From Trichosphaerium sp. ATCC 40318 (taxonomy: Eukaryota > Protista > Tubulinea): a stretch of DNA of 64,000 nt. A program made the position numbers and the translations under genes. The notes beneath the pieces were generated by a model. That model had not been told where the DNA came from. It worked only from the letters and a program-made list of their open reading frames with translations, and did not search any database. The DNA lies in contig JALMLS010000194.1 in assembly GCA_038496445.1 (NCBI GenBank), forward strand, positions 1 through 64,000. Direction: 5' to 3'. Below, piece by piece: positions 12,493-64,000 of this stretch (position 1 is its first letter; the number at the start of each line of letters is the position of its first letter).

Positions 12493-12559
12493 AACCACGC
12501 AATACTGCAAAAGAAATTCGGCGACAAATTGCCAGCTCTTTAAATTTTTTTTCGCGAAG

Positions 12560-18485: not shown

Positions 18486-20585
18486 ATGACTACTGAACAG
18501 CTGCCTAAAGAGATTTTATCATCTATTCTTTCCGAATTGCCGCTTTGCGAGTTGAATAGAGTGTCGTTGGTTTGTAAGTACGTGATTTTGGTTTAATTAG
18601 ATAAATAACGGTATACAGACGCTGGTCAGACACGTTTAGTAATGAACGGCTTTGGAGGACCCAATTTCGTTCTAGGTGGATGCCACAAAGCGAAGATGTT
18701 CCAAAATCGCATAGACTAGCGTCTAAAACATGGAAAGAGGTAATACATGGCAAAAACAAGCGTTAAAACTCACAATATTACAAGACGTACATTAAACACC
18801 ATATAACGAGTACATGGGATTATATTGATACACGTATAAAGCTTGACGAAGTGCGTTTGGGCAAAATAATGAAATGACACACTTGGCGTTAACGTATATT
18901 TTTTTGAAGGTATGGAACGTTAGTTGGAGTCCAAACGGAGAATATCTTTGTGCTTCAGGCAAGTCTACAAATACCTGCTTTTTTTTTTTTAAAACCTTCT
19001 TCAACAATGACACGTACAGTGGTCGTTCCATAGGACCATGGATGATCTCCTCCAGCGACCACTATGTTGTCATGTTTGTTGAGGTTTTATTTCTTGAAAG
19101 GTACAAGACGTGTTAATTAGTGTTACAGGCGCACATGGTATAAGCTTGTTTAAACTAGAAAATGATGAACTAGTATCTTGGCTTGACCTGGTAGATGGTA
19201 GAAGTGCTGTATCTTCACATAAATGGTCTGAATGTAGTAATTACCTTGTCTATGCTATGAAAGTACGTCAAGCACATTTTTTTTTTGTCACGTGATTTAA
19301 TTTAACCAAACTACAGGACAATGAAGTATGTACTATTTGGTACATGAAAGAGGAAAAGTATGTTGGAACGTTTGATGCGTCACCTTTTGATATAATGCCG
19401 CAGTTTGTGACAATAGAAGATAGGCTCTATTTGCTTACAAGTAAGATTTTCTTGGTACCTTTTTTTTTTTTTTTTTTTTCTTCTTTTTGTTATGTCTTTC
19501 TTTCTGCCTTTCTCTTTATGCTATCTATCTTGTTTTTTACTCATGTTGTTTCAAAGATTGTATTCATAGACGTCAAGTAGTTTTTTCAATATATACTATC
19601 TCTAATGGTAACTTGTTACCTTACAAGGTGGATGACTTTGGGATGACAATTCATAAGATGATACCACAAAAGTATGTATCTGAAATATGGTATTATACAA
19701 TATCAGGTCTGATGGTAACCAATGATCAGAAATATCTTGGCACGTGACAGAATATAAGTCTTTCACGTTTTTTTCGTTTTATTCACAAAAATATCACGTG
19801 ACTTCAAGTTTTTTTGTACTAATTTGGTGGTGACGTTTAGTCGCTTCTTGTTTTGATGAGATAGGTGGTTCAGATTATAAGATAAGCATAGTTGTCTATG
19901 AAATAAGCATGCTCTTCTCAGAAGAAACGAATGTGCTTAATTTTGATAATGCTTATTTACATGTACACGCGCCAGGAGATATTGTTGGATTAGTATGTTC
20001 ACCTGATTCGAAATCTGTGCTAGTAACGTATGTCTGTACAACACTTTTTGCTGTATTTTTTTTTCTCCAATTTTGAAGCTCTTTCGTTCAATTTCTTTGT
20101 TTCTTTTGTCCTTATTTGTCAATTTAACCTCTTATTCAGTTTACGTGCTATTACTGAAGAAGGCAAACTTCTTGAGGATTTACATATAGTAGAAATGTCG
20201 TTAGAGGATGGATCAATGACGACTATTGTTAATACAAAATGTCTTCATGGTGGAGGAGCTGATGTGTTTTTCATTTTTCCTTCATACTCCAATGACGGTA
20301 ATTATATTCTATGTGGTGATAATCATGGGAAAGTGGGTATTTTCACTAGAGGTGGAATAAAGCTGGCTATAATGGAACACAGTAAGTAACAAAAAATGTT
20401 GTGTGGCTTGTTTTTTTTGTTTTCTAATTTTTTTCTTACAAGAAATGAAAAAGCTTGTAAACCAAATATCTTGGCACCCGATAAAAGAAATGTTTGCAAC
20501 TGGATGTGATGATTATACTGTAAAATTATGGAAACCAAAAGCATCCATCGCTCCTCAAAAAGTGCAAGAAACGGAAGAAAACTAA
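18486..20585 (+). CDS. F-box / WD40-repeat protein, multi-exon
   Basis: N-terminal F-box MTTEQLPKEILSSILSELPLCELNRVSLV...RRW....LWR; WD repeats VWNVSWSPNGEYLCAS, YSNDGNYILCG, VNQISWHPIKEMFATGCDDYTVKLW. Confidence 0.8.
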
Positions 20586-20958
20586 TGATTTGATGTCATA
20601 TATGAAGTAAAAAAAAAAAAAAAGCTGTTCTGTGTTTGTCATTCGATTATAAACCTTGTAGTAAAAATATAGTACTAGCTGTATCAAGTTGGTGGCATTC
20701 TGTAAGAAATAGCGAGTTGTCACATCTACCAATCAACAAATCTAACTAACGACAGAAGCTTTCATCAATTGATAATGGAACAATATTTTCTACATTGAAA
20801 TTGTTTGTTAACTGTTTTGATAATACGATTGATTTGCTTGTACTTAGCGAATTTATTGAAAAGGTTTTTGTGTACAATACAAGTATTCTGACTAATTTGC
20901 TATGCTAATTCATCAAAAGGTGTAAATTCTCAGGCCTTCATTAACAATGATGTTCTGT

Positions 20959-22706
20959 TTATAGCATTTTGTTTTCCTTTGCTTTTATGACTTTGATACG
21001 CTCAATCACATTGAATCCAAGCTCTTCTAACACTTCAGGAATGATTTCTCTTTTCTTGATGGCTGCTTTGTTCATCAACGATCCAAGTTCTTGTGCTCTT
21101 TTACTTGAAATACCCAACCTCAACAATGTTGATTTCCAATCATATTTGGGAGTAGCGATTGATTGATTATCTTGAGGTGGACAGAACTCCGACTAAACGA
21201 ACAAAATTAAATGTGAAGAAAATAAAATTAAAACAAGACACCTTTGTGTGAGCGACTGAAACATGAGGCTTGTCATTCCATGATTGTTCAGATAAAAGTG
21301 ATGTGTCTACATCAAGTGGCAAGCGAGGATTGTTAACCTAAAATACCATGTGAGATACGTATTGCTTATTTTCTGATACTTACATTGTTGATGTATTCAT
21401 CTCGATTTTGGTGTATTTTAAAGGCTTCAAGGGCATCTTGAATGATATCAAGGTGATCAGGATCATCTCCAAACTTGGTGTAATCACGATTGGGATCAAC
21501 CACAGCTTTTGACAAGTACTTATCTTTTCTGTCTTCTTTTAACTCTGCATTCATTGCTTTCACAGCATCATCGTTTTTATCTTTTGCGATTACTTTATTG
21601 GCTGGTTTAAAGTGCTTGTAGATTGTGAGACAAAAAGAAAGACAAATAAGATTTCAAAGTACCTTTTCATAATTGGTGAATGTTAACTTTTGTGGTGTTG
21701 ATTCACCACAATGATCTCCACCTGTGACCAACTGAAAGTCATGAGATATTGCCAAGGAATGACATCGTTTATTGGCAAACTCAAGATATTTTCCAGGTAA
21801 TTTTAATGGTTTGTTTGATGAGAACGAATCAATCCATTTTCCTTCACCCCAACCAAACAAACAACCTTCATCATCAATCGCAAATGATGTATACACACCA
21901 GCATGTACAGATTTGATGTTATTGAGTCCTTTGATGATACCCTGGCCATAATCGTCATCAATACCCAACCCAAGACGCCCATCCTCGTTGTATCCAAAAG
22001 AAAATACTTGTCCTGACTTGAGGAGAACAAGTACATGACTAAAACCAATGGCAATATCAGTGGCATCATCAATACTTGGAACACGTGAAATTGTCTTTGG
22101 ATTCAAGAATAACGATTTATCTCTTGCTTCATCTCTTGTTTTTCCCCAAAGAAAGACATGACCTGTTGATGTCATTGCTCCACTTACATAACAATTAGTT
22201 TGAATTTTTTGAACATTTTGAAGATTTGAAATAACCGCTGGTGATGAAACTTTCGAATTGTCGAATGAATGACCCAATCCTTGATTTATGTTGTCTCCCC
22301 AAGAGTACACATGACCTGATTTTGATAATGCCATACTCACATAAAAGGCAGAGACTTTCGTGATATTGTTGAGATTTGGAACACGTGTTGGTGACGAAAC
22401 AGGTGACGCAAAGTCACCCAGACCCAATGCGCCACCTGAATTATATCCCCATGCATACACAATACCGTTTGAATCAACTGCAAGGCTATGTTCGCATCCA
22501 GCAGCAATACAGACGATATTTATGACTGATTTTATTGGTCTTGCGATAGAACTCGAGAATTCGTCTGTGTTACCCAATTGGCGCTCACTGTTTTGTCCCC
22601 ACGTGTAAACAAAGCCATCGTCTGCGATTACCATTGAATGTTCGCCACCAGTGGCCAAACGGTTAACATATTGTAAATTAACCGACGAAGATTGTGGCTC
22701 TGCCAT
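20959..22706 (-). CDS. RCC1-linker-SAM copy D (intact)
   Basis: ORF 21654-22706 is the RCC1 exon, followed by three spliced exons. SAM-like DWKSTLLRLGISSKRAQELGSLMNKAAIKKREIIPEVLEELGFNVIERIKVIKAK. Confidence 0.88.
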
Positions 22707-22856
22707 AAACGTGTATGTTAGTAATACTACAACAATTGGGCAGTAAGTACTTTAGTTGACGCGATCAAATAGTGCGCTCCGCGGCGTTTATTTCGTAAAA
22801 CAGAATTGCGAACCAAACATGTGACGACCTTATTGTTCCATGACCAAACGTCATAT

Positions 22857-24702
22857 TTAAACCAATCGTCTCTTGGATTTCTCAAAAATTGCCCTTGCTT
22901 CGTTTGAAATGTTCCTATGTGCTGCGTTTATCCTTTACAATGACAAAATTAGCTCACCAAACGCTATAGGTGAAGAATTTGCTAATTACGTGGTTGACGT
23001 ATTGAATTCAAGGCGTTGATATTGGTACTACTCTACTGGACAGGTTCAAGAAAAACATTTTTGGAGATGGTAGAGCAACTCGTAGTGTTGATGTTATAGT
23101 CGTAAACAAAACAGCTCAAAAACTCCGTCTAGTTAAAGCACCTCAACCAAAAGACAGCTCGGATGGTTCAGGTACGTAGAAAAAAGAAAAAAAACACTCA
23201 CATAAACACGTGATCATTAATCTTATTGGTAAAAATAGCTGCATGCTTTTTTACAACATCAAGTATCTGATACTGTTATAGTGAAAGAATAAACAAAAAT
23301 AGCATGCTCAGGAAGAACCACAGAAAATTTAAATTAAAATTCTGTCTTAGGCTTTAATAATTTTAACCCATTCCACATGCATAACAAGGCCGCATAAATA
23401 GTGTGTTAGTATACTTGTACAATTTTTGAAATAACTTACTTCCATATATAAGACTCTTTCTCTTGAAACTCTTCAAACCATGGTATCCCTGTTATCTGTA
23501 ACACAGGATAAGTATGAAAACAAACAAAAAAAAAGACGAAAGCATTTTTTCCAAACCTCTAGTCTTTCGTAACCAAACATACTGTCCATTTCGTTTTGCC
23601 TTTTATCAGCCCATCCAATCAAGTTTATACATTCTATTTTTATATCAGAAGATTCTTTAGCTTTCCAAGCAAGTCCCAGAGCAAACAAAAATGCCTAAAA
23701 AAACAAGTCAAAAAAAAAAAACCAAACAAATCAAATAAGCAGCTTTGGACACGTTTTTCAAAGTTGATAATCAATCAAAATCATAACCTATACACGTATG
23801 CAAATACTGGCGTTGAAATTAAAGCGTAAGTTTCTACTGACAAGTAACAACTGACTTTTTTTTTTTTTCGAGAAATTTTGTTTTTTTTGAAACAATCACC
23901 ATCACCTTTAGCTGAGGGGCGGTTCTTGGAGGAGATGCTAATTCACGTACTTTTTCTACATCTCGTAGATCAGATTTTGATAAATTCACGTGCTTGCCTC
24001 CCTTTCTGGCACAATGAGCAGTGAATTCTTTGCTGTCCGAGTTTCGTTTCACTGTAAATAAAGGAACATCTTTAGTTCGTACTAACTGCCTTTCAGTATA
24101 AGAACCAACAATGGAATACCGGTTAACATTTTCAATTAAAAGAACAGAAGCATCTGAAAAAAGTTTCATCACAAACCTTACAGGAGTGTTAAAAGAACAA
24201 GTAAAAATATTCAAGAGTTCTTACTTTGGATTGTATTCTAGACGTTCTTGCACCTCCCAGAACCTCGCCATCTTATCCTCACCATCTACACTAACCACAG
24301 CATTATATACAGACTGCATTAAAAGATAAGAATCCCGAGAATCCGAAAAAAAAGGCCAAAACTGGAAAACATGCCTCTTTATTTCAAAACAAAAAAAAAA
24401 AGGGTCTTACCAAAAAGCGATCTTCCTGGCCACCAAATACCTTTTTACCGTTCGCTATATTCGATAATGGAGAAGACAGCTTTGGTTTGACGTTGTAGAG
24501 TATAACTGTGGTGATATCATCGTTTTGAGATTGGTAAGGGCGGATTAACTTAAAATCGAGAAAAAAACCGTTAGGGTAGTTGATAAACGGGTTTTTTGAT
24601 TTAATGTACGTGTTTTATCCAAGATAGAGGAAGATCATGAGGCATAGAAGGATTTAAGCTGTTTTTAATCAAAACCGATTTAGAACCGTATATTTTCTTC
24701 AT
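22857..24702 (-). CDS. Hypothetical multi-exon protein
   Basis: Exons join in frame across GT-AG introns (e.g. ..QERLEYNPK|FVMKLFSD..). Putative ATG 24702; last exon INAAHRNISNEARAIFEKSKRRLV*. No family recognised. Confidence 0.45.
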
Positions 24703-25619
24703 TCTAGTACATGACGCTTCTAATTAATCTATTGTGAGCCTCAATTTCGGTTTTTAATAGTAGAGAAATAAAAACGACTATTTTTACCTAAACCGTACCC
24801 ATTCGTAAGGTATCGCGTAGGTCCATTAGTTGCGCGATAAGATAATGAATATCATCAGGAGCATTATAAAAATGCGATATTTTAGAGCCCATAGTGTACA
24901 CCTTGTTACAAGGAATAGGTGGCTGCAATATGGTTTATTTTGTTTAGGAAGGTTGGATAGTGTAACCTACACCTAAATATAGATTCTTCTCCAAGTCAAA
25001 CACGTCTCCTTGTTCAGCCGAATTACAAAAGTTATGAACGTAAAAAAAGTTGTAAAAAAAAGACTTCAAGGAGAGTTACGGACAGTTTTGAATACTACTT
25101 GGAATTGTCTTTGTGAAGCCAACCAAACGGTGTAGACCATAATGTTCAACTCAATAAATAACAACTTGCGCACGTGTTTTTTGTTCGAACAAGAACACTA
25201 TGTGGGTAGAGTTGCATCTATTCTTGAGTTGTCGTACCAACACCAAGTCAGACAAATAAAGCCCAACAACATCATCCTCTTTCACATTGTTGCAGACAAC
25301 AAGTCCAAAAACAAGCCAACCAACTTCAAAACCCCATCTATATTTGTTGTACAATCTTTCGCCTTTATTGCCGGCAGTAATATTGGTTCAAATGCTTGCT
25401 TACTTGATTAACAAAATAATTACAAGATGTAGCCTTTAGTATCCAATCAAACAAATTACACATTTCTTCATACAAACATGGACAAGCATTTAAGCCAGTG
25501 CCAAAAGATTTGTTAGGATAACCGCTGGTATTAATTGGTTCCTTTTCACTCCATCCAATACAAAAAGATGCTTGTTTATTTGTCTGCAATGTAGTTCACT
25601 TTCACAAGATGGTATTTGT

Positions 25620-31106: not shown

Positions 31107-32894
31107 ATGGCAGAGCCGCAATCTTCGTTGGTTAATTTACAATATGTTAACCGTTTGGCCACTGGTGAACACCATTCAATGGTAATCGCAGACGATGGCT
31201 TTGTTTACACGTGGGGACAAAACGATCACCGTCAATTGGGTAATACAGACGAATTAACGAGTTATATCGCAAGACCAATAAAATCAGTCATAAATATCGT
31301 CTGTATTGCTGCTGGATACTTTCATAGCCTTGCAGTTGATTCAAACGGTATTGTGTATGCATGGGGCCGTAATTCAAACGGGTCATTGGGTCTGGGTGAC
31401 TTTGCGTCACCTGTTTCGTCACCAACACGTGTTCCAAATCTCAACAATATCACGAAAGTCTCTGCCTTTTATGTGAGTATGGCATTATCAAAATCAGGTC
31501 ATGTGTACTCTTGGGGAGACAACATAAATCAAGGATTGGGTCATTCATTCGACAATTCGAAAGTTTCATCACCAGCGGTTATTTCAAATCTTCAAAATGT
31601 TCAAAAAATTCAAACTAATTGTTATGTAAGTGGAGCAATGACATCAACAGGTCATGTCTTTCTTTGGGGAACAACAAAACATGAAGCGGTAGATAAACCA
31701 TTATTCTTGAATCCAAAGACAATTTCACGTGTTCCAAGTATTGATGATGCCACTGATATTGCCATTGGTTTTAGTCATGTACTTGTTCTCCTCAAGTCAG
31801 GACAAGTATTTTCTTTTGGACACAGCTTGCATGGGTGTCTTGGGTTGGGTATTGATGACGAGTATGACCAGGGTATCATCAAAGGACTCAATAACATCAA
31901 ATCTGTACATGCTGGTTTGCATACATCATTTGCGATTGATGATGAAGGTTGTTTGTTTGGTTGGGGTTTTGGGAAATGGATTGATTCGTTCTCATCAAAC
32001 AAACCATTAAAATTACCTGGAAAATATCTTGAGTTTGCCAATAAACAATGGCATTACTTGGCAATATCTCATGACTTTCAGTTGGTCACAGGTGGAGATA
32101 ATTATTGTGGTGAATCAACACGACAAAAGTTAACATTCAACAATCACCAAAAGGTACTTTGTAATCTCATTCATCTTGCTGTCTATTTGACAAGTCATTA
32201 GCAAACAAACAAAGATACAATCGACACTCAGCAATTGGATGAACAGCCAATCAACAATTCATCAATCAAAGTACATCCATCTGAAGAGATGTTCATATCA
32301 AAAAAGGGTATTCGAGATGTACCTCAGAAATTTGGACAAACAGAACAAGATCTTCAGATTCTCGAAAATGCTCGTAATCTCATTCAATCCAAACAACAAC
32401 AAGTCGCCGATATCAAAGTACGTATACAAACACCAAACTATTTTACATATTTGTCTTATTGTAACACTTTTCAGGATGACTCTATTGATGATTTGTCCAA
32501 ATACAATCCACCCACCAATAAATCTAATCAACGACCACCTATAATCGATGTTGATGATCTTGTATCAAGACAATCATGGGTTCAAGATAAGTTTGAAACG
32601 ATCAACCTCAGCAACGTACAACCAATAATTTTATTTCCTCATTTTTTACTAAATTGGTTTTTTTTGTAGCCTTCAATCGGAGTACCATCTGAATCTTTGA
32701 CAAATAACCAATCTTCATGGGTTTCAAAATTAGTGGTGGCAGGGTTTAGCGAAACAAGATCACAAGAGTTTGGATTATTGTTGGATCGAATGTGCGTTGA
32801 ATTGAAAGATATGACAGGTGAGCTTATGAAAGAGATTGGGTTCACACCATCAGAACGTTTCAAGTTTATCAAATATCAAGACAGCCACATGTAA
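31107..32894 (+). CDS. RCC1-linker-SAM copy E (intact; divergent linker, class II SAM)
   Basis: RCC1 exon ending NNHQK|GT. Divergent exon 2 (FISKKGIRDVPQKFGQTEQDLQILENA). Last exon SWVSKLVVAGFSETRSQEFGLLLDRMCVELKDMTGELMKEIGFTPSERFKFIKYQDSHM*. Confidence 0.85.
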
Positions 32895-35983: not shown

Positions 35984-36739
35984 GGAAGATAATCGCAGTA
36001 TTTTACCTACGCAAACTGTACACGGTACGACCAAACCACATATGTGCTCAATGAGCTAAAAGCGAATTAAAACGGTATGATGTCCTACAAAGCTACACGC
36101 ATTACTGCCAAACACACGGCATGAATGCCTCAAACACTGGCTTTACATGCTTCAAAAAATCAACGTACGTGTATAACGTACTAGCGCCTACTCCACGCTA
36201 ACAAAAGCGCTATGGCAGCACCCAAACAGCAAGGCACCCAGTGTAACAATTAATAACGTTAAACCCTCCCCAAACTCCACCAGCGTTGCTGTAGGCTTTG
36301 TAAACGCCGCCAGGTGTCAACTATGTAAATAAAAAATTTTGCTATGGGGTTTGTTAAATCACGTGGGTTTGAAACGGTGATTCAAGCGTGAGGTAGATCG
36401 CATTAAAAAGGACATTTGCAAAATGTGTCATGAGTCAAATCCGTCAGATCTGACAGCTCAGCGGAAACTGGATTTTTTTTGCTAAAAGTCAGTCTCAAGA
36501 CAGACAATGTTAAAAAAAAACAACTTATATCCAAAGAGCCATTAAATACCACTATCACCAAAATACCAGCTGTAGAGGTATTTGCATACCAAGATCCAGA
36601 TACAAGCAAAAGAGCATTGGTAAAAAATGTTTCAGTATGGTTAACTCGTAAAAAAAAGACGTCCGAGATTTGCCTACCAAAATGAAATTAGATGGCTATT
36701 TTTCAAAGCCAACAATTATTACGACCATATCACGCGTTT

Positions 36740-38518
36740 ATGGCAGAGCCACAATCTTCGTCGGTTAATTTACAATATGTTAACCGTTTGGCCACTGGTG
36801 ATGAACATTCAATGGTAATTGCAGACGATGGCTTTGTTTACACGTGGGGACGAAACTATGAGCGCCAATTGGGTAATACAGACGAAAATGAGAGTTATAT
36901 CGCAAGACCAATAAAATCACTCATAAATATCGTCTGTATTGCTGCTGGATACTTTCATAGCCTTGCAGTTGATTCAAACGGTATTGTGTATGCATGGGGT
37001 TATAATTTAAATGGTGAATTGGGTCTGGGTGACTTTGCGTCACCTGTTTCGTCACCAACACGTGTTCCAAATCTCAACAATATCACGAAAGTCTCTGCCT
37101 ATGAAGTGAGTATGGCGTTATCAAAATCAGGTCATGTCTACTCTTGGGGATACAACAGATATCAAGGATTGGGTCATTCATTCGACAATTTGAAAGTTTC
37201 ATCACCAGCGGTTATTCCAAATCTTCAAAATGTTCAAAAAATTCAAACTAATCGGTTTGTAAGTGGAGCAATGACATCAACAGGTCATGTCTTTCTTTGG
37301 GGAACAACAAATAATAAAGCAAGAGATGAAGCAAGAGATAAATCATTATTCTTGAATCCAAAGACAATTTCACGTGTTCCAAGTATTGATGATGCCACTG
37401 ATATTGCCATTGGTTCTCGTCATGTACTTGTTCTCCTCAAGTCAGGACAAGTATTTTCTTTTGGACGCAACTACAATGGGTGTCTTGGGTTGGGTATTGA
37501 TGACAAGTATGGCCAGGGTATCATCAAAGGACTCAATAACATCAAATCTGTACATGCTGGTGTGCGGACATCATTTGCGATTGATGATGAAGGTTGTTTG
37601 TTTGGTTGGGGTAAAGGGAAATGGATTGATTCGTTCAGATCAAACAAACCATTAAAATTACCTGGAAAATATCTTGAGTTTGCCAATAAACGATGGCATT
37701 ACTTGGCAATATCTCATGACTTTAAGTTGGTCACAGGTGGAAATAATCATTATGGTAAATCAACACCACAAAAGTTGACATTCAACAATCACCAAAAGGT
37801 ACTTTGTAATCTCATTCATCTTTCTGTCTATTTGACAAGTCATTAGCAAACAAACAAAGATACTTGCAAATCCGAAGACAATGACATGAAAGAAGACAGA
37901 AAAGACAAGTACTTGTCAAAAGCTGTGGTTGATCCCAATCGTGACTACACCAAGTTTGGAGATGCTCCTGAACATCTTGATATCATTCAAGATGCCTTTG
38001 AAGCCTTTAAAATACTAAATCAAGAAAAAGATGTATTGTTTGTATTACAAAAATAGCTTTTAACACTAACGAACCTGGTAGACTGACAAAGTGTTTACTC
38101 CGTCACCTGATGAATCCAATCTCCAACCTCCAAATGACACGAATGAAATACCGCCACTAAATTCATGGATTGATAAGCCTCAAGTTTCTGTTGTTAACAC
38201 CAACAAGAAGGTAACCATCTTTGTTTTGCGTTCAGAAACAGAAAAATAACATAATTATTTTAGTCGCAATTCAGTCCACCACATGAGACTCAATCAATTG
38301 ATACTGTTGTTCAACCGACACAACCACAGATCGTTAATTGGAAGTTATTGCTTGCGAGGTTGGGCATCAAAAGCGAGAGAGCACAAGAACTTGGATTGTT
38401 GATGAACGAATTACGTATTAAACCTGACGACATTAACCAAGATGTACTGATTGAAATTGGATTCAGTTTGATGGAACGTATCAAAATCACCAAAGCGAAG
38501 CTTAACAACGTCATTTGA
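36740..38518 (+). CDS. RCC1-linker-SAM copy F (intact)
   Basis: RCC1 exon ending NNHQK|GT; an in-frame upstream ATG exists at 36692. Exon 2 QTNKDTCKSEDNDMKEDRKDK... SAM-like NWKLLLARLGIKSERAQELGLLMNELRIKPDDINQDVLIEIGFSLMERIKITKAK. Confidence 0.88.
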
Positions 38519-40697
38519 ATCATTAGGTGAACAATCAAAGAAGAAGTTACAAATACAAAGATGTACTGACGTTGTAGGAGAATAGAATAAATAGTTTTAT
38601 ATTTATTTTATCACGTGTATATCACTAGTTTTTTTTTTTTTTTTTTTGCGTTTTTTTTTGTTAGCCCCTACGTCCACTCTTCTTCAAACAGCTTGGTAGA
38701 AAACCTACCTACTGACTCTCATATGACACCAATGTGGCTCAGTGCTATTTCTTTCAAGAATCGTTAGAGATTAAGTTTTGGCAGGTGCTATAAAAGCTTA
38801 CTCGTTTACAAGGCACTAATCACGCTCACTTTTATTTTTTTTTATTTTCGGATTTGGTATCGCTTTCAAGGTTACTATGGTTACTAGGTATAAATAACCG
38901 CTTGGCGTACATGGGTTTGCACTACTTTTCGCGAAATTGATTAGAGCCACGATTGACTAAAAAATGTGCTGTTTTCTGCAAAAATGTTGTATAAAAGGTC
39001 TCCAAAAGAACAGATTTCGAAATTGATTATAGCCACGATTGGCTAAAAAAAGTGATATTTTGTATGTTATTGAAAAATTAAAGTCCTGTTTGTGATTGTG
39101 AATAAGCACTACATAGCACTTGCTTACATATGTTAATATTCTCATAGAGTGTAAACGTTTATTGTCGTTTATCAAGCTTCCAATACATTAACCAACAACA
39201 GCTGATTTCTTGATGCCATTTTTTTCCAAATCTGAAATTTGTTACCTTCTAAAAGTTGAAACGTTTTTTCTTGTGCTTGTTACAATTATGGCGCCACTAA
39301 TACCACAACATCTAAAGCATGTTTTTAGATGATTTTAAAATTTTCAAGTGCTACAAGTACGTGCATACCTCTGGGTGCTTCAGGGAATACTTGCCTAAAT
39401 GGCACTATTTTTTTGTGTACCATTTATGATAACCTATATAACTATATTTGCATATCATACAATGTGGAATTAAACAGTACCTATATAGTAGGCTACTGTT
39501 CAAATAACATTATGGATTAATATCCGAAAGTATGATGAGTGAAAGGCTCAGTGATTCTACGAAATTTTGTTTAAAAAACAGCGTTTTTGGGTGGCTCTTT
39601 TTTTTCCTTTTTGACTGTACATTAATCCATAGGCTGTGAATGTTTATGGAAAGACAGCTTTGATTTGGACAGGTAATATCACACAACAAGGTAAAACATA
39701 TGTTATTCATGTTACTATTTAGTACTAATGGTATTCAATAAAATCGATCAATTTTAGTCAAAGCCAATGCCGATATATCGGCTGTTGATAAACTACTTAC
39801 GTTTATTTGTCTGCGTTGCATCAACATACATTGGTGCCAACCAAGGGTTTACATAGGAGTTACACCTACCACTCTCAACATGAGAAGAGACAGGACGCCT
39901 ACTAGGCGGACTGTAATTGTCCGGTTAAGACCAACCGCCCAGAAAGGAGTGATCAGGTCAAGTTGTAAAAGCTGACCAAGTTCGTTGATGGTTGATAGCA
40001 ATGTCAGATTGGAGGAGCGCTGGCAGGCGCTCATATTTGTATTTGTGAGTGAATAAACGTTGAGAGCACATGCTGCCACCGTGTTGAATAGAGTTATATT
40101 CCAGCCAGACAATTCTGAGAAGAACCAAGAACTCAATTTGTTGCTTGGGTTTGAGTTTACCTAAGTTGTATAGTATACTAGAGTTGTACTTGAAAGATAG
40201 TTTAAGCGTAGAGCATAGAACAGAGGCCAGATTAGGCGGAGGGGAATAGGCTGTTGATAAAGCTGGAAACACAGAGCACAGGACCTTCAAATTTTTAACT
40301 GTCTTGACGGAACTTACAAGAACTAGCGAAAGTGACAAGATCTGGCGCTGCAAATTTTTGTTTAATTAATAACACGACTTTTGCTAAGGCATTCATGGAT
40401 ATGGCAATAAACTACTTTGCAAGAGAATTTGTATGTAGCAGCTGCCGCTTTAGCTGCTGTTTTTTCTTGTCAACCTTACCAGAACGCTCTGATGTGAGCT
40501 TGCTAATAGGTGCCACTGCCAAATGTGTTTTAAAAAACAGTGCAAAAACTTTATTTTGGCATCGCTGCACGTAGGTGATGCTACGGTAGCATTATTTTGA
40601 GTTTTTGAAACAAAGAGAGCAAGGATAACAATACGGACTATACAGTCACGTCACAGTCAATGTAAACAATACAGCTTTTGATCTCTGTGCAACTCAA

Positions 40698-43591: not shown

Positions 43592-45376
43592 TCAAATGAT
43601 GTTGTTAAGCTTTGCTTTGGTGATTTTGATACGTTCCATCAAACTGAATCCAAGTTCAATCAGTACATCTTGGCTAATGTCGTCAGGTTTAATACGTAAT
43701 TCGTTCATCAACAATCCAAGTTCTTGTGCTCTCTCGCTTTTGATACCCAACCTCACAAGCGATAACTTCCAATTAATGATCTGTGGTTGTGTCGGTTGAA
43801 CAACAGTATCAATTGATTGAGTCTCATGTGGTGGACTGAATTGCGACTAAAATAATTATGTTATTTTTCTGTTTCTGAACGCAAAACAAAGATGGTTACC
43901 TTCTTGTTGGTGTTAACAACAGAAACTTGAGGCTTATCAATCCATGAATTTAGTGGCGGTATTTCATTCGTGTCATTTGGAGGTTGGAGATTGGATTCAT
44001 CAGGTGACGGAGTAAACACTTTGTCAGTCTACCAGGTTCGTTAGTGTTAAAAGCTATTTTTGTAATACAAACAATACATCTTTTTCTTGATTTAGTATTT
44101 TAAAGGCTTCAAAGGCATCTTGAATGATATCAAGATGTTCAGGGGCATCTCCAAACTTGGTGTAGTCGCGATTGGGATCAACCACGGCTTTTGACAAGTA
44201 CTTATCTTTTCTGTCTTCTTTTAACTCTGCATTCATTGCTTTCATGTCATTGTCTTTGGCTTTGCAAGTATCTTTGTTTGTTTGCTAATGACTTGTCAAA
44301 TAGACAGAAAGATGAATGAGATTACAAAGTACCTTTTGGTGATTGTTGAATGTTAACTTTTGTCGTGTTGATTCACCAAAATGATTATTTCCACCTGTGA
44401 CCAACTGAAAGTCATGAGATATTGCCAAGTAATGATTTAATTTATTGGCAAACTCAAGATATTTTCCAGGTAATTTTAATGGTTTGTTTGATGAGAACGA
44501 ATCAATCCATTTCCCTTCACCCCAACCAAACAAACAACCTTCATCATCAATCGCAAATGATGTACATATACCAGCATGTACAGATTTGATGTTATTGAGT
44601 CCTTTGATGATACCCTGGCCATACTTGTCATCAATACCCAACCCAAGACGCCCATCCTCGTTGTGTCCAAAAGAAAATACTTGTCCTGACTTGAGGAGAA
44701 CAAGTACATGCTCATAACCAGTGGCAATATCAGTGGCATCATCAATACTTGGAACACGTGAAATTGTCTTTGGATTCAAGAATAATGATTTATCTCTTGC
44801 TTCATCTTTTGTTGTTCCCCAAAGAAAGACATGACCTGTTGACGTCATTGCTCCACTTACAAACAAATTAGTTTGAATTTTTTGAACATTTTGAAGATTT
44901 GGAATAACCGTTGGTGATGAAACTTTCCAATTGTCGAATGAATGACCCAATCCTTGATATATGTTGTTTCCCCAAGAGTAGACATGACCTGATTTTGATA
45001 ACGCCATACTCACATGAAAGGCAGAGACTTTCGTGATATTGTTGAGATTTGGAACACGTGTTGGTGACGAAACAGGTGACACAAAGTCACCCAGACCCAA
45101 TGCGCCATATGAATTACAGCCCCATGCATACACAATACCGTTTGAATCAACTGCAAGGCTATGTTCGTATCCAGCAGCAATACAGACGATATTTACGAGT
45201 GATTTTATTGGTCTTGCGATATAACTCTCATTTTCGTCTGTATTACCCAATTGGCGATAGTTTTGTCCCCACGTGTAAACAAAGCCATCGTCTGCGATTA
45301 CCATTGAATGGTATCCACCAGAGGCTAAACGGTTAACATATTGTAATTTAACCGACAAAGATTGTGGTTCTGCCAT
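43592..45376 (-). CDS. RCC1-linker-SAM copy G (intact)
   Basis: ORF 44285-45376 is the RCC1 exon. 3' exons and introns are nearly identical to copy F, in inverted orientation; TGA at 43592. Confidence 0.88.
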
Positions 45377-49836: not shown

Positions 49837-52800
49837 TTAGAAATTCTCCTTGTGGTAGACAAATTTGGTACCGTTCCTCGTGTACTTTATAGCAGCCTCA
49901 TTAAGCTTCTTAGAGAAAATAGGAGGTCCACAAAAGAACACTCCTATTTTTTCGCCCTTGTATCGCTGCTCCTGTTGCTGGAATATCTGCGGTATCTTAG
50001 GCCTGTGGTAGTTTGTACGGGCTTCAAGACTAAACAAAAAAAGAAAACGTCAGAAGAGAGATATTTGGGTTTAAACGTTTAAAAAATGGAAACGTTTTTT
50101 GGAAAGTCTCAGACATAAATGTGTGAACTAAACAATCTTTTTATTGCTACGGCAAGAAATTTACGTTCAAGTAACATGAATAAAATAGTTTGATAAAAAC
50201 ACGTAGATGCGTAGACGCGTAAAAAGTAAGAAAATAAACAAAACTACAAAAAAAAAATTTTAAATGCTTACCCAGTTACTTGATCAGGGGCATCATCACC
50301 AGCGATCATAACAGCCTTTATTTGATCAGGAGAGAGCGCAGAAGTTAAATAGATATTAATCTCGAGGAAATCACTGCTTGACTTAGATTCTAGATCTATA
50401 ATAGATAGGGTAAACATAAGCGATGTTTGGACCGATTGTTGTGAATTAGAAATAAAAGCCAAAATAATTCAATCTTTAATAAAAAAAGTTGTAGACGCAA
50501 GTTTACGCAAAACAACGCTTATTTGAGAGCATTACGTGTGCGTAGAGGTTTGTTTTTTATTTGTTAGAAAAAGGGTATTGTTGGCACTGTGTAACGGCAT
50601 AAATGACGCTAGATCACCATGACAATAATAGAGATTTTGAATTGGGTATAAGCCATACGATAATAAAACAAAAAAATCCAATTAACGAAAGGGTTTACGC
50701 GTAAACATATTTTTTGCCCAACTTTGAGAAAAGGGAAAAAAAAAACTGCGTTTAGGAAAAAAGTCTGACAACTCAATTGATTATAAAAACTGACGCTATG
50801 GCGCGTAGAGAAGACAGTCTAGATTTTTTTCCAAATGGCGTTATACAGTAAAATCTTTTTTGTAGACTAGAATAGAATTAACACACGTACCGGATAGTAG
50901 ATCAATGAACCATTCGAAGGCATGACGATCTCTGTTGGACCAATAAAAGTGCACTTTGTTAAGGTTTGTTAGATTTCCTTCGTCTATTTGGTAACGGATG
51001 TCCTTTAGGATGGATGCCATTGGCGTAACACCGATACCAGCTGAGAAGAGCATCAAATTCTTAAATTTGTAGAACTCCTCTGAAGCAGCTCCATAAGGCC
51101 CATCAACGAGCAGGATAGGCTTTCCGTTTGGTGCAGTCAACATGTTTTCCTGTATAACACCAATTTCTTTTTCTGGGTTGAGAAGCTGGTAGAGTTCTCC
51201 TGTCCAATCACCAACAATCTAAATTACATTAAATCAGCAAATTTTTTTATAACCTAGCAACAGCACCAACTCAAACAGTGTGCTTAACGCCTTTCACTTT
51301 AAGCCAGAAATGCACGTAAATAAAAAATACAACTACACGTACTCGAATATGAACTGATAAGAAATCTTCGTCAGGACTACTACTGATAGTAAAAGGATGC
51401 CACTCGTAGTCAGCAATATATGGACATTGCAAAAAGATGTATTGACCTGGCTGGTAGTTGAAGGTAGCTTTCTTCATACGAATCTCCAATACGCGTGAAG
51501 GGTGTTGTATTGCCTTTAAAATAATAGTCTTTTGAGAACCACGGATGAGTCTGATAAGACGTTCAAGAGCATAGAACGAAAATGGTCCAAGAACCCAAAT
51601 CCAAAAGTTTGCACGCTCAAGTAGCTCCAATTGACCTTTTTCGTAAAGTGTAAGTGAAAGAAATACAAAAAGGGTTTTTCGAGTTATGAATCTACACGCG
51701 TAGCACGCGTAGTTCAAATTTACAATTACTAAATACTATTTTGTAGACTTGTTTAATATGCATAAAAACGTACCATGTGCGGCTATGAGACCATAGAAAA
51801 CAATAAAGAGATGGTGAGTGTACCAAAAGGCCTCAAACATATTGCTCCTCACGTATTGCACAGCAGACGTGTACATTAGAACCATCACAATACTAGTGAG
51901 TACCCCAGTGATACCAGGAAGGCGAGCAAACACCTACAATAAAAAAATTAAATAAATAAATCTCTTTATACCAACCAACGCAACATAGTATTTAATGACG
52001 CAATGGTACAACAAAAAAGAACGATTTGGGAAATGAAAAAAACAAAAAAAACAAAAAACAAAAATGAGCGAAAATGTCGTCCTTCGTTGTGCTTTATAGA
52101 AGTACGTACAACAACCCAATAAGATACAGGATCAGGTGAGAGGTTCAATGCAACCAATTCATCAGATGTAGCACGGTTACTTGTGACATTCCAGAAATTA
52201 ATAAAATGAGCTCCAGAATGGAATGTAACCAAAACCATTACCCACCAAGCTACGAACTTGTGGAATACTATATTCTTATCTATAGGTAGATACGTGCCAA
52301 CGAATGAGCCGCGAAGACTAAAAATCATCAGCGAAATTTTTTTTTGTTTTTTTCAAATAAGTCTTATTTAGCTTCGTTTTCTTTGCAGTATTCGAGTTGT
52401 CAGCTTGTTTTGTTTGCTCCAAAATTACGTACAAAGATAAAAAGTTTCTCAGTACGCAAACAAGAAGAAACGCCGCGTTAAACTTAATAGCAGCTGCTGT
52501 ACCGCGAGCAATACATAAACCGTGACCAAGGACCTAAAAAAGGTATTTAGCGGCTAATTTAGTTTACTTATTCTTTCTTTAAAAACAACCCATTTACTGT
52601 ATTGAGCGCGTATGTTTATAGCAAAAGAGTATTTTTGCGTACTTGAAAAGGAGTAATCTGAATACCTGGTGTAAGGTCGCTTTGGTCTTGTCTTACCATG
52701 TAATCTTTGCAATGGCGTTAGCTAATTGGAATTTCGTAATAACCGTACAGTGGTACCGTTCTCCGATTAACACAATGTTAATTATAACGTAAACTATTAT

Positions 52801-55774: not shown

Positions 55775-57533
55775 ATGGCAGAGCCGCAATCTTCGTCAGG
55801 TAATTTACAATATGTTAACCGTTTGGCCACTGGTTTAGGCCATTCAATGGTAATCGCAGACGATGGCTTTGTTTACACGTGGGGACGAAACAATGAGCGC
55901 CAATTGGGTAATACAGACGAAAAAACGAGTTCTATCGCAAGACCAATAAAATCAGTCATAAATATCGTCTGTATTGCTGCTGGATGGAATCATAGCCTTG
56001 CAGTTGATTCAAACGGTATTGTGTATGCATGGGGCTGTAATTCATATGGCGCATTGCACTTTGCATCACCTGTTTCGTCACCAACACGTGTTCCAAATCT
56101 CAACAATATCACGAAAGTCTCTGCCTATTTTGTGAGTATGGCGTTATCAAAATCAGGTCATGTCTACTCTTGGGGAGACAACAGATTTCAAGGATTGGGT
56201 CATTCATTCGACAAGTTGAAAGTTTCATCACCAGCGGTTATTCCAAATCTTCAAAATGTTCAAAAAATTCAAACTAACTTGTTTGTAAGTGGAGCAATGA
56301 CGTCAACAGGTCATGTCTTTCTTTGGGGAACAACAGATCATTTGTTGCAAACAGACCATGAAGCGATAGATAAATCATTATTCTTGAATCCAAAGACAAT
56401 TTCACGTGTTCCAAGTATTGATGATGCCACTGATATTGCCATTGGCGAAGAGCATGTACTTGTTCTCCTCAAGTCAGGACAAGTATTTTCTTTTGGACAC
56501 AACTACTATGGGTGTCTTGGGTTGGGTATTGATGACAAGTATGGCCAGGGTATCATCAAAGGACTCAATAACATCAAATCTGTACATGCTGGTGGTTGGA
56601 CATCATTTGCGATTGATGATGAAGGTTGTTTGGTTGGTTGGGGTGAAGGGAAATGGATTGATTCGTTCTCATCAAACAAACCATTAAAATTACCTGGAAA
56701 ATATCTTGAGTTTGCCAATAAAGAACAACATTACTTGGCAATATCTCATGACTTTCAGTTGGTCACAGGTGGAAATAATCATTATGGTCAATCAACACCA
56801 CAAAAGTTAACATTCACCAATTATGAAAAGGTACTTTGAAATCTTATTTGTTTTTCTTTTGTCTGACAATCTACAAGCACTTTAAACCAGCCAATAAAGT
56901 AATCACAAAAGATAAAAACGATGACGCTGTGAAAGCAATGAATGCAGAGTTAAAAGAAGACAGAAAAGATAAGTACTTGTCAAAAGCTGTGGTTGAGCCC
57001 AATCGTGATTACACCAAGTTTGGAGATGCTCCTGATCACCTTGATATCATTCAAGATGCCCTTGAAGCCTTTAAAATACACCAAAATCGAGATGAATACA
57101 TCAACAATGTAAGTATCAGAAAATAAGCGATACCTATCTCACATGGTATTTTAGGTTAACAATCCTCGCTTGCCACTTGATATAGACACCTCAATTGTAT
57201 CTGAACAATCATGGAATGACAAGCCTCATGTTTCAGTCGCTCACACAAAGGTGTCTTGTTTTAATTTAATTTTCTTCACATTTAATTTTGTTCGTTTAGT
57301 CGGAGTTCTGTCCACCTCAAGAGAATCAATCAATCGCTACTCCCAAATATGATTGGAAGTCAACATTGGCGAGGTTGGGTATTTCAAGTGCAAGAGCACA
57401 AGAACTTGGATCGTTGATGAATGAATCAGGTATCAAACCTGGAGACATCACCTCAGATGTATTAGAAGAGCTTGAATTCAATCCAATTGAACGTATCAAG
57501 GTCATCAAAGCAAAGCGCAAAAATGCTCTATAA
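55775..57533 (+). CDS. RCC1-linker-SAM copy H (intact; reference model, 538 aa)
   Basis: Exons 55775-56830, 56878-57108, 57155-57250 and 57300-57533, all introns phase 0. SAM-like DWKSTLARLGISSARAQELGSLMNESGIKPGDITSDVLEELEFNPIERIKVIKAK. Confidence 0.9.
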
Positions 57534-59072: not shown

Positions 59073-59893
59073 TTACACCTCCCACCCAAGATTTAGCTCG
59101 ATATTATAGATTTGACGCATCAGTATCAGTGTACCTATGCTATCCACTGCTTCCAAAGCGTACTGCAATGAGCACAAGGTACAATAAAGAGTTGAAAAAG
59201 CATGGAAAATGGCTTCGACCCTAAAAAAGAAGTCAGTAACTGAGAAAAAAAAAACCACTACAACACACAAGAGCACGTACACAATCATAGACAACTTTGA
59301 GGAGGTTCTTCTCTGGGTCTACTTTTCATCTGCACCGCAAGGGTAGATTATTGGAGCACCCTTATCGTTACAGATAACCTTACGAATACCTGTGAAGCTG
59401 ATTTTTCCAGAATCTGTTTTTGGGCATTTCATGATGTTTCTCTCATCTCCATTGGCATAGTGAATGTAGCACAATTTTGTAGCGAATGGCATGGTATCAT
59501 GGTTAACCTTCATTAGGAGTCCACAACCCATACTGAAACTGACCTATCAACAAAAGATAAGATACAAAGAAACTTAAACTCCAAGCAACTTTGTAACATA
59601 CACATTGGACAGAGAAGGCCATCAGCAACAACAACCTTCAAGAGTTTTGTGACAATTGCATAGTTGATACCATCACCTTGAATTACGTTGTATCTACATA
59701 GTAAAACAAAATCGTCAGTAAAGATCAAAATGAGAAAAAAAAAAGATATGCTTACCCTTTTTACAACCTTGTTACCCCTTTGAGTTAGTTTCAAATCCGC
59801 CAGTCTTAGCACCTGCCTTCAAACCAGCAACAACACAGTCTTTTGGATCACTAGAATCTAGGCGAATAACCATGATTGAGTTACCACGCTCCT
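59073..59893 (-). pseudogene. Possible decayed multi-exon gene
   Basis: Exon-like blocks with GT/AG edges (ERGNSIMVIRLDSSDPKDCVVAGLK; YNVIQGDGINYAIV..CPMC) interrupted by in-frame stops. Confidence 0.25.
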
Positions 59894-60242
59894 AAAGGGC
59901 TGTGAGAAAAGAAAATACTCATCGAATAAAAAAAAAACAAAACAAAAAAAAACAGTTTCAATCTGGTGTGCAATCTAAAATTGCTCGTGTTTAGCTTTAC
60001 AATCTTCACGTGGGTAGGTTCATTTTGTTAGATGCAAAGCAGTTGAGTTTCGCGTTCTTTTTGTGGATGTAGCACTCAAAAGTACTTGGCACTTGCCAAG
60101 ACAAAGACAATCGTTTAAATAGGCGCAGGAACATGTAGTAACTCATCTGCGGCAGGTTTAAAACCTACCATAAGAAATGGCGTCAAGCTTAGTAGTTCAA
60201 AAGCCAACGAATATTGAGCACATCACGTAACCTAACGTTTTA

Positions 60243-61990
60243 ATGGCAGAGCCGCAATCTTCGTCGGGTAATTTACAATATGTTAACCGCTTGGCCTCTG
60301 GTTGGGCACATTCAATGGTAATCGCAGACGATGGCTTTGTTTACACGTGGGGACATAACAATGAGCGCCAATTGGGTAATACAGATGAAGAAAAGAGTTC
60401 TATCACAAGACCAATAAAATCACTCATAAATATCGTCTGTATTGCTGCTGGATGGAATCATAGCCTTGCAGTTGATTCAAACGGTATTGTGTATGCATGG
60501 GGCTGTAATTCAGATGGTAAATTGGGTCTGGGTCACTTTGCATCACCTGTTTCGTCACCAACACGTGTTCCAAATCTCAACAATATCACGAAAGTCTCTG
60601 CCTATGAAGTGAGTATGGCATTATCAAAATCAGGTCATGTCTACTCTTGGGGAGACAACTCATATCAAGGATTGGGTCATTCATTCGACAAGTTGAAAGT
60701 TTCATCACCAGCGGTTATTCCAAATCTTCAAAATGTTCAAAAAATTCAAACTAATTGTTGTGTAAGTGGAGCAATGACGTCAACAGGTCATGTCTTTCTT
60801 TGGGGAACAACAAATAATAAAGCAATAGATAAATCATTATTCTTGAATCCAAAGACAATTTCACGTGTTCCAAGTATTGATGATGCCACTGATATTGCCA
60901 TTGGTTTCGTCATGTACTTGTTCTCCTCAAGTCAGGACAAGTATTTTCTTTTGGACACAACGACAATGGGCGTCTTGGGTTGGGTATTGATGACGAGTAT
61001 GGCCAGGGTATCATCAAAGGACTCAATAACATCAAATCTGTACATGCTGGTGTGTTACATCATTTGCGATTGATGATGAAGGTTGTTTGTTTGGTTGGGG
61101 TAAAGGGAAATGGATTGATTCGTTCAAATCAAACAAACCATTAAAATTACCTGGAAAATATCTTGAGTTTGCCAATAAACGATTTCATTACTTGGCAATA
61201 TCTCATGACTTTCAGTTGGTCACAGGTGGAGATAATTATTTTGGTGAATCAACACCACAAAAGTTAACATTCACCAATTATGAAAAGGTACTTTGAAATC
61301 TTATTTGTCTTTCTTTTTGTCTCACAATCTACAAGCACTTTAAACCAGCCAATAAAGTAATCGCAAAAGATAAAAACAATGATGCTGTGAAAGCAATGAA
61401 TGCAGAGTTAAAAGAAGACAGAAAAGATAAGTACTTGTCAAAAGCTGTGGTTGAGCCCAATCGTGATTACACCAAGTTTGGAGATGATCCTGATCACCTT
61501 GATATCATTCAAGATGCCCTTGAAGCCTTTAAAATACACCAAAATCAAGATGAATACATCAACAATGTAAGTATCAGAAAATAAGCAATACGTATCTCAC
61601 ATGGTATTTTAGGTTAACAATCCTCGCTTGCCACTTGATGTAGACACATCACTTTTATCTGAACAATCGTGGAATGACAAGCCTCATGTTTCAGTCGCTC
61701 ACACAAAGGTGTCTTGTTTTAATTTTATTTCTTCACATTTAATTTTGTTCGTTTAGTCGGAGTTCTGTCCACCTCAAGAGAATCAATCAGTCGCTACTCC
61801 CAAATATGATTGGAAGTCAACATTGGCGAGGTTGGGTATTTCAAGTGCAAGAGCACAAGAACTTGGATCGTTGATGAACAAAGCAGCCATCAAGAAAAGT
61901 GAAATCATTCCTGAAGTGTTAGAAGAGCTTGGATTCAATGTGATTGAGCGTATCAAAGTCATAAAAGCAAAGGAAAACAAAATGCTATAA
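60243..61990 (+). pseudogene. RCC1-linker-SAM copy I with two -1 frameshifts (or consensus errors) at hypervariable slots
   Basis: 5 nt instead of 6 at 60906-60910 (GGT TTCGT CAT) and at 61052-61056 (GGT GTGTT ACA). The rest of the gene is intact to TAA 61990. Confidence 0.75.
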
Positions 61991-64000
61991 ACAGAACATC
62001 ATTGTTAATGAAGGCCTGAGAATTTACACCTTTTGATGAATTAGCATAGCAAATTAGTCAGAATACTTGTATTGTACACAAAAACCTTTTCAATAAATTC
62101 GCTAAGTACAAGCAAATCAATCGTATTATCAAAACAGTTAACAAACAATTTCAATGTAGAAAATATTGTTCCATTATCTATTGATGAAAGCTTCTGTCGT
62201 TAGTTAGATTTGTTGATTGGTAGATGTGACAACTCGCTATTTCTTACAGAATGCCACCATCTTGATACAGCTAGTACTATATTTTTACTACAAGGTTTAT
62301 AATCGAATGACAAACACAGAACAACTTTTTTTTTTTTTTTACTTCATATATGACATCAAATCATTAGTTTTCTTCCGTTTCTTGCACTTTTTGAGGAGCG
62401 ATGGATGCTTTTGGTTTCCATAATTTTACAGTATAATCATCACATCCAGTTGCAAACATTTCTTTTATCGGGTGCCAAGATATTTGGTTTACAAGCTTTT
62501 TCATTTCTTGTAAGAAAAAAATTAGAAAACAAAAAAAACAAGCCACACAACATTTTTTGTTACTTACTGTCGTGTTCCATTATAGCCAGCTTTATTCCGC
62601 CTCTAGTGAAAATACCCACTTTCCCATGATTATCACCACATAGAATATAATTACCGTCATTGGAGTATGAAGGAAAAATGAAAAACAAATCAGCTCCTCC
62701 ACCATGAAGACATTTTGTATTAACAATAGTCGTCATTGATCCATCCTCTAACAACATTTCTACTATATGTAAATCCTCAAGAAGTTTGCCTTCTTCAGTA
62801 ATAGCGCGTAAACTGAATAAGAGGTTAAATTGACAAATAAGGACAAAAGAAACAAAGAAATTGAACGAAAGAGCTTCAAAATTGGAGAAAAAAAAATACA
62901 GCAAAAAGTGTTGTACAGACATACGTTACTAGCACAGATTTCGAATCAGGTGAACATACTGATCCAACAATAACTCCTGGCACGTATACATGTAAATAAG
63001 CATTATCAAAATTAAGCACATTCATTTCTTCTGAGAAGAGCATGCTTATTTCATAGACAACTATGCTTATCTTATAATCTGAACCACCTTTCTCATCAAA
63101 ACAAGAAGCGACTAAACGTCACCACCAAATTAGTACAAAAAAACTCTTGAAGTCACGTGATATTTTTGTGAAAAAAAAGAAAAAAACGTGAAAGACTTAT
63201 ATTCTGTCACGTGCCAAGATATTTCTGATCATTGGTTACCATCAGACCTGATATTGTATAATACCATTTTTCAGATACATACTTTTGTGGTATCATCTTA
63301 TGAATTGTCATCCCAAAGTCATCCACCTCGTAAGGTAACAAGTTACCATTAGAAATAGTATATATTGAAAAAACTACTTGACGTCTATGAATACAATCTT
63401 TGAAACAACATGAGTAAAAAACAAGATAGATAGCATAAAGAGAAAGGCAGAAAGAAAGACATAACAAAAAGAAGAAAAAAAAAAAAAAAAAAAGGTACCA
63501 AGAAAATCTTACTTGTAAGCAAATAGAGCCTATCTTCTATTGTCACAAACTGCGGCATTATATCAAAAGGTGACGCATCAAACGTTCCAACATACTTTTC
63601 CTCTTTCATGTACCAAATAGTACATACTTCATTGTCCTGTAGTTTGGTTAAATTAAATCACGTGACAAAAAAAAAATGTGCTTGACGTACTTTCATAGCA
63701 TAGACAAGGTAATTACTACATTCAGACCATTTATGTGAAGATACAGCACTTCTACCATCTACCAGGTCAAGCCAAGATACTAGTTCATCATTTTCTAGTT
63801 TAAACAAGCTTATACCATGTGCGCCTGTAACACTAATTAACACGTCTTGTACCTTTCAAGAAATAAAACCTCAACAAACATGACAACATAGTGGTCGCTG
63901 GAGGAGATCATCCATGGTCCTATGGAACGACCACTGTACGTGTCATTGTTGAAGAAGGTTTTAAATAATAAAAAAAAAGCAGGTATTTGTAGACTTGCCT
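61250..64000. repeat. Inverted segmental duplication of ~18957-21700
   Basis: Continuous near-identity through the WD40 gene, the intergenic DNA and the linker/SAM exons of copies D and I. Confidence 0.9.
62364..64000 (-). CDS. Second copy of the F-box/WD40 gene (3' part; continues beyond window)
   Basis: Near-exact reverse complement of 18957-20585 including introns, with a few substitutions and a 3-nt indel (MEHDSK vs MEHSK). Confidence 0.85.

Follow-up and report, generated by a model that had tools for sequence, protein, structure and literature searches.

The first 64 kb of contig JALMLS010000194.1 of Trichosphaerium sp. ATCC 40318, hereafter the window, carry part of a family of about 60 genes that each encode an RCC1-like propeller. 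Two of these genes, D and I, sit at the inner ends of one inverted duplication. At their hypervariable loop codons (slots) they differ in 44 of 172 nucleotides (25.6%), whereas the arm DNA outside the RCC1 exons differs in 96 of 8952 (1.07%, or 98.9% identity; Fisher p = 5e-43). Other pairs of family loci with young flanks agree, which upholds the proposal of an earlier note on this DNA that slot content turns over far faster than the flanks diverge: the loops are almost completely reshuffled by the time the neighbouring DNA has changed by about 1%. The reading we consider the most probable, with fair though not full confidence, is that gene conversion and crossover among the roughly 60 RCC1 genes redistribute loops from a pool that is kept diverse by selection; exchange between copies, and not a dedicated mutator, would then be the route of loop turnover.

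The contig of the window is called C104, and C13, C168, C171, C226, C313, C446 and C546 denote other contigs of the same assembly (70.3 Mb, 642 contigs). The following features define the pair; exon borders of D were transferred by alignment from the RNA joints seen on I.

20959-22706, minus strand: gene D, RCC1 propeller plus tail; exons 22706-21663, 21614-21384, 21337-21242 and 21192-20959
60243-61990, plus strand: gene I, partner of D; exons 60243-61287, 61336-61566, 61613-61708 and 61757-61990
10540-22720 (at least): D arm; the partner arm is C104:73500-60228, and the window includes only 60228-64000 of it
60228-64000: in-window part of the I arm, from BLAST and MAFFT alignment

A conserved 30-mer of the RCC1 exon occurs 62 times in the genome, giving a family of about 60 genes, and 59 near-full-length copies (57 besides D and I) entered the family alignment. 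The window holds eight copies of the ~1.05-kb exon and one remnant; seven of its 12 open reading frames (ORFs) of at least 140 amino acids (aa) are RCC1 exons. What the paralogs share runs, introns included, from ~15 nucleotides (nt) before the ATG to the stop codon (borders at D coordinates 22706-22726 and 20958-20978); most copies have promoters and 3' ends of unrelated sequence.

By sequence, the encoded propeller clearly belongs to the RCC1-like domains. D scores 193.5 bits and I 153.1 bits against the RCC1-like domain of Pfam (PF25390, cut-off 150), and 119.4 and 108.7 bits against PF00415 (cut-off 21.7). The best solved relatives found by HMMER are HERC2 (E = 1.6e-43), UVR8 (about 1e-35) and RCC1 (about 2e-27), and the protein aligns to the RCC1-like domain (RLD) of HERC2 repeat by repeat. 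Slot codons were defined by an amino-acid entropy of at least 1.3 bits across the family without D and I; 58 codons qualify. Their clusters recur every ~50 codons, at 21, 71, 121, 172, 222, 271 and 314 and again at 38, 88, 138, 191, 239, 288 and 331, a spacing that points to seven repeats of about 50 residues, as in RCC1-like domains.

The inverted duplication is larger than the earlier note had described. From 18957 to 22720, D is 97.1% identical overall to I at 64000-60228 (BLAST, MAFFT). A sliding comparison gives 0-2 mismatches per 100 nt from 18957 to ~21650, confirming that the flanks match almost base for base, and 5-11 per 100 nt inside the RCC1 exon. The observation is thus confirmed; the supposed start of the duplication at 18957 is a mere mirror image of the window end, and the arms run on to at least 10540 and C104:73500. 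Across the larger range, 15068-22720 matches C104:67884-60228 at 98.0% over 7.7 kb and 10523-15073 matches C104:73510-68948 at 94.4%, while C104:1-8084 mirrors 85299-77229 at 97.3% as part of a lower-identity extension of the duplication across C104:1-85299. At the inner end the homology stops abruptly at 22720/60228, about 15 nt upstream of the RCC1 start codon.

Within the aligned RCC1 exons (D 21654-22706, minus strand; I 60243-61296, plus strand) all nine slot pairs that had been listed from the sequence (GE/WA, QNSE/HNNE, CE/WN, YNSGGA/CNSDGK, FYV/YEV, IN/SY, CY/CC, YNED/HNDN and RC/RF) are found in the codon alignment. Framework nucleotides differ in 17 of 879 positions (1.9%; p = 0.03 against the flank), and framework third positions with the same amino acid in 8 of 266 (3.0%; p = 0.01). 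These silent differences are unevenly spread. Codons 1-200 hold seven in 148 (4.7%; p = 0.0014 against the flank), comparable to the silent divergence of unrelated close paralogs (1-3% and more); codons 201-350 hold one in 118 (0.85%), which is flank-like. Even in the 3' third of the exon, 10 of 22 slot codons differ despite flank-like silent sites.

D and I are consequently not the clean control they were taken for: homology flanks the exon on one side only, and silent sites in codons 1-200 look like those of separate paralogs. The earlier note had itself named a breakpoint at the 3' end of the exon, with two anciently diverged exons beyond it, as a result that would undo its inference. A breakpoint does lie at an exon end, and the 5' two-thirds of the exon are silently diverged; the end in question is 5', not 3'. 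Although D/I is an unclean pair, the inference is rescued by a second pair in the same arms, D2/I2, and by seven other pairs in which both flanks are young.

11457-12492, minus strand: RCC1 exon D2, the second pair in the same arms; partner I2 at C104:71483-72565
14926-15073, minus strand: remnant (last ~148 nt) of a third RCC1 exon, which is intact in the I arm at C104:68058-69095
4338-5408, minus strand: RCC1 exon with flanks 1.1-1.5% diverged from C104:79905-80960; 55% of slot codons differ
55775-56839, plus strand: RCC1 exon with flanks 1.1-1.2% diverged from C546:4920-5974; 64% of slot codons differ

In total, 19 locus pairs have a flank that is at most 2% diverged. In eight of them both flanks are young, among them D2/I2, 4338/79905, 55775/C546_4920, 68058/C446_16261 and 86584/C446_6173, and 16-64% of their slot codons differ (46-64% in seven of the eight). 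D2 and I2 are separated by 73 substitutions in 1033 nt (7.1%); their upstream flanks differ by 1.2% and their downstream flanks by 3.0%. A 20-nt deletion near codons 303-305 puts D2 out of frame. The remaining 11 pairs are homologous on one side of the exon only, and the exon marks a switch of flank partner: C446_12831, for example, shares its upstream DNA with D2/I2 and its downstream DNA with 4338/79905. When the core subfamily is considered by itself, 55.9% of slot codons differ in young-flank pairs and 62.4% in unrelated pairs (p = 0.002); the former keep just a tenth or so of their initial resemblance. The pair C446_6173 and C104_86584, both of whose flanks are ~1% diverged, has seven mismatches in codons 1-150 and 40 in codons 151-350, and represents a half-done exchange, an intermediate stage of the process.

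Where the loop differences come from can be read in part from the other copies. For 57 of the 61 D/I substitutions, both states are present in at least two of the 57 other family members, and only one state is private. A copying-model analysis resolves both exons into segments whose best matches lie in different paralogs, and in each exon one such segment is exact.

22142-22429, minus strand: exact tract in D, 288 nt (codons 93-188), identical to paralog positions 31384-31671, 8.4 kb away
31107-32161, plus strand: RCC1 exon that carries this D-identical 288-nt tract at 31384-31671
60662-60813, plus strand: exact tract in I, 152 nt, identical to the copy at C313:26798-27708; rank 11 of 1711

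Over all 1711 copy pairs the longest exact match has a median of 54 nt and a 99th percentile of 127 nt; the D tract ranks fifth, after four near-identical pairs. Permutation of the polymorphic sites gives p <= 0.0005, in a scheme that treats all sites as exchangeable and that also flagged low-variability stretches shared with distant copies (codons 93-121), which were not counted. The copy at 31107 alone shares two rare D states, those at codons 133 and 160, and both lie inside the tract. The tract reflects recent conversion and may have been copied in either direction. It is free of errors and probably younger than the D/I flank divergence, although with ~3 differences expected this is suggestive only. 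In codons 1-200, silent framework variants are carried along with the loops. Shared states, exact tracts and linked silent sites together bear out exchange with other copies as the route, one of those the earlier note had offered.

A simpler history, that of a crossover hybrid, was rejected as a full explanation. With its upstream positional homologue (C168_121245 or C546_9638) as the 5' parent and D as the 3' parent, the I exon should resemble these two throughout; only codons 51-150 resemble C168_121245 (six mismatches, against 23 to D), and in codons 1-50 and 201-350 no copy is markedly closer than any other. C446_12831 likewise does not behave as a simple crossover hybrid of its two flank partners.

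Selection is visible in the pool of variants that these exchanges would draw on. Pooled over 11 young pairs, pN (amino-acid-changing differences) in slots is 0.275 and pS (silent differences) 0.119; in the framework, pS is 0.037 and pN 0.009. Nearly every loop haplotype among 30 close copies occurs just once, and the loops are practically unlinked to one another (r about 0.03-0.07). Exchange alone cannot create such a pool. Selection must feed it, favouring amino-acid change among both point mutations and new junctions inside loops, in line with the six loop clusters without an exact match that are described below.

In the account we favour, D and I would be the innermost genes of a large inverted segmental duplication set within an array of ~60 RCC1-propeller genes. 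The ~1-kb RCC1 exon would recombine with many partners because it is the only long stretch common to all copies. Short and long conversion tracts, from tens to several hundred nt, would overwrite pieces of the exon, and crossovers within or at the exon would swap whole flanks. Such exchanges would be visible almost only at loop codons, in about three loops on each of seven blades, because the framework is nearly identical in all copies. With the loop pool itself kept diverse by selection for amino-acid change, exon content would be ~90% randomised with respect to the family pool once the flanks differ by ~1%. The mosaic tracts, the states held in common with other copies, the silent sites that travel along, the recurrence in further pairs and the surplus of amino-acid changes are demonstrated by the sequences; the direction and timing of the events, and the use of flank divergence as an age, are what we infer from these patterns. 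For work on this family the account carries a practical warning: no single duplicate pair can be used as a clock, because its flanks and its exon have different histories.

Four observations weigh against this account. The flank differences are clumped (chi-square 71.2, 35 degrees of freedom, p = 0.0003), with runs of 1.5-2.5 kb without any difference beside bins at 2.2-2.6%, and this patchiness makes the flank clock unreliable; conversion between the arms probably takes place as well, and the value of 1% is no simple age. For the same reason it is uncertain whether the duplication is young, as it had been called. Furthermore, when two copies agree in one nucleotide at a hypervariable site, this says little about copying, because only four nucleotide states are possible. 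The search for donors of each slot, which the earlier note had suggested, did return exact multi-loop tracts; for six of the 20 differing loop clusters, however, neither D nor I is exactly matched in the 57 other copies, and whole-loop copying therefore cannot explain everything. These clusters call for new mutations, for donors that were lost or not sampled, or for tracts that end within a loop. Finally, the present assembly was probably made from amplified DNA.

The first of these points leads to the alternative that survives best, although we regard it as unlikely: the clock would be wrong. The duplication would then be old, its arms, together with copies such as C446, homogenised by long-tract conversion in the manner of sex-chromosome palindromes, and selection would reject homogenised RCC1 loops. 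The clumping of flank differences would follow naturally, and framework silent divergence in the exons (3-4%) only modestly exceeds that of the flank bins with the most differences. Over 5.8 kb, C446:17489-23259 and D arm 15068-20834 are 99.8% identical, yet the structure nearby differs by two rearrangements that are bounded by RCC1 exons. What this alternative leaves unexplained are the exact 288-nt and 152-nt identities with paralogs that are not duplication partners, and the half-replaced exon of C446_6173/C104_86584. Both processes may also act together; this alternative alters the estimate of the rate and not the mechanism of exchange.

C446 (23,259 nt) aligns collinearly to the D side of C104 and reaches leftwards past base 1 of that contig. 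It belongs to a set, with C546 and the end of C168, of 1-3% variants of C104 segments that carry exon-bounded rearrangements; they may represent paralogs, haplotypes or versions that stem from separate nuclei.

Such variants bear on a further alternative, to which we give still less credence, that of an assembly artefact. D and I would be haplotypes of one locus, or copies of it from different nuclei, joined in inverted orientation, or else a mosaic made by correction and polishing across paralogs. Inverted chimeras are typical of multiple-displacement amplification. The published Trichosphaerium sp. assembly was produced from amplified DNA with Canu, three rounds of Pilon with short reads and Redundans (PMC10521059). 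The D side, moreover, begins at base 1 of the contig, and many small contigs, C446 and C546 among them, differ by ~1-3% from segments of C104. Of eight single-nucleotide deletions in family members, five fall in slot codons, which make up ~17% of codons; the excess could stem from error-prone exchange at loops or from assembly and polishing errors at the most variable places.

Against an artefact stands, first, the structure of the locus. The 37.5-kb spacer is not a high-identity palindrome, and the arms differ by indels, among them a deletion of ~1.06 kb at 15067 in the D arm relative to C104:67885-68947, which removed ~170 nt of upstream DNA and the first ~890 nt of the third RCC1 exon. This exon is intact in the I arm and in C446, a third version, so the arms are not simply two alleles. 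The DNA upstream of D is single-copy in the assembly. From another data set, one RNA-like contig spans 60141-60296 and thereby crosses the I arm boundary; the only public runs with this DNA consist of RNA-like contigs in small sets, in which no more than 28% of sampled words are covered. Mis-polishing, in addition, would make copies more alike and would not give nearly unique loops everywhere. Allelism of D and I, too, would leave the contrast between flanks and loops to be explained.

About as doubtful as an artefact is a stronger version of the exchange account, in which the RCC1 exon would be a dedicated recombination hub: directed breaks would re-deal loop cassettes, frameshifted copies included, very fast among the ~60 genes and possibly between the nuclei of the amoeba, which is multinucleate. 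If this were true, the ~1%-diverged versions (the D and I sides of C104, C446, C546 and C168) would be snapshots of ongoing rearrangement and not fixed paralogs.

A targeted mutator, which the earlier note had also considered and which would make new loop states by reverse transcriptase, deaminase or error-prone repair faster than neutral mutation, could account for the six D/I loop clusters unique in the sampled family, the rare single-nucleotide states that D and I each carry at loop 38-40, the enrichment of single-nucleotide deletions in slot codons and the near-uniqueness of loop haplotypes family-wide, but is very improbable: a single private state is found among the 61 substitutions, silent framework variants travel with the loops, exact multi-loop tracts are held in common with named paralogs, and the D/I slots show all six substitution classes (16 transitions and 28 transversions, against 54 and 42 in the flanks) with no A-specific or C>T/G>A bias.

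The gene models of the pair are as follows. D has an intact reading frame, with an RCC1 ORF of 350 aa. Downstream of the RCC1 exon of I, spliced RNA-like contigs from three public runs define three GT..AG introns of 46-48 nt. The RCC1 exon is thus exon 1, followed by three tail exons with a KFG motif, an SWxDK motif and a helical end. A Pfam search of the tail exons returned no match and lends no support to a SAM-like label for the tail. In the last exon (D 21048-21147, I 61802-61901), six clustered mismatches change five of 77 amino acids, far more than the flank rate would give, and the tail may carry variable positions of its own. I has single-nucleotide deletions near 60906 (codon 222) and 61056 (codon 272), plus a 3-nt insertion, and is frameshifted in the present assembly. 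RNA-like contigs gave no confirmation of these frameshifts: where they carry an additional base at 60904/60906, they correspond to D-type copies or to the paralog at 36740, and not to I.

The WD40 exons had been described as attached to the RCC1 exon. In the ORFs they form a separate gene, which is encoded on the other strand and runs convergently towards the RCC1 gene, and they have weak WD40/beta-propeller scores in Pfam, below the curated cut-off.

18874-20585, plus strand: WD40-repeat gene, converging on gene D; mirrored copy at 62364-63843, minus strand
36731-38527: inner inverted repeat, partner 45387-43583, with RCC1 exons at 36740-37806 and 44325-45376

The inner inverted repeat shows the same contrast as D/I, with a tail flank that is 98% identical and exons at about 92-94%. 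Its centre, at ~41.06 kb, lies ~0.4 kb from that of the outer D/I arms (~41.47 kb). The spacer between the arms also contains a minus-strand ORF fragment at 51271-51717 of the FAD-binding ferric-reductase/NADPH-oxidase type (PF08022, E = 9e-17). Just upstream of gene D, a ~190-nt dispersed repeat (23005-23194) matches C13:318410-318599 at 99% identity and about ten further places at 74-78%. Elsewhere in the family, the RCC1 exons at C171:133390-134443 and C226:75263-76316 are 100% identical over 1054 nt, which may reflect a very recent duplication or redundant contigs.

A limited literature search returned no earlier description of a hypervariable family of RCC1-propeller genes. In a free-living amoeba, such a family would be a new protein scaffold for an inherited repertoire of binding proteins, a role that we infer. 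Known RCC1-like domains such as the RLD of HERC2, UVR8, RCC1 and RPGR, with which the family clearly belongs by sequence, are single-copy and slowly evolving, whereas here ~60 copies carry two to three hypervariable loops per blade. The nearest precedent found for rapid change is the RCC1-like domain of HERC5/6, which is reportedly under positive selection.

In genomic layout, the locus is comparable to the ampliconic palindromes of primate Y chromosomes, which are kept by gene conversion from arm to arm. Both have large inverted arms around a spacer, multicopy genes and patchy identity. The arms described here are ~98.9% identical, and not above 99.9% as in the Y palindromes, and the genes they contain are the least and not the most alike part.

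The closest likeness is to recognition families diversified by conversion, as in vertebrate MHC and KIR, plant NLR clusters, Plasmodium var and trypanosome VSG mosaics. Clustered paralogs with a conserved framework and hypervariable codon patches are found in all of them, as are short mosaic tracts between non-allelic copies and an excess of amino-acid-changing differences in the patches; frameshifted copies join in the sharing, and gene bodies serve as rearrangement breakpoints. The present family differs in its scaffold, a seven-bladed RCC1 propeller instead of an immunoglobulin, LRR or DBL fold, and in its host, a free-living marine amoeba; nothing here shows programmed or somatic switching. 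The kind of system, a clustered recognition-type family shaped by interlocus conversion and unequal crossover, is therefore well known, and the RCC1 scaffold is its unusual carrier.

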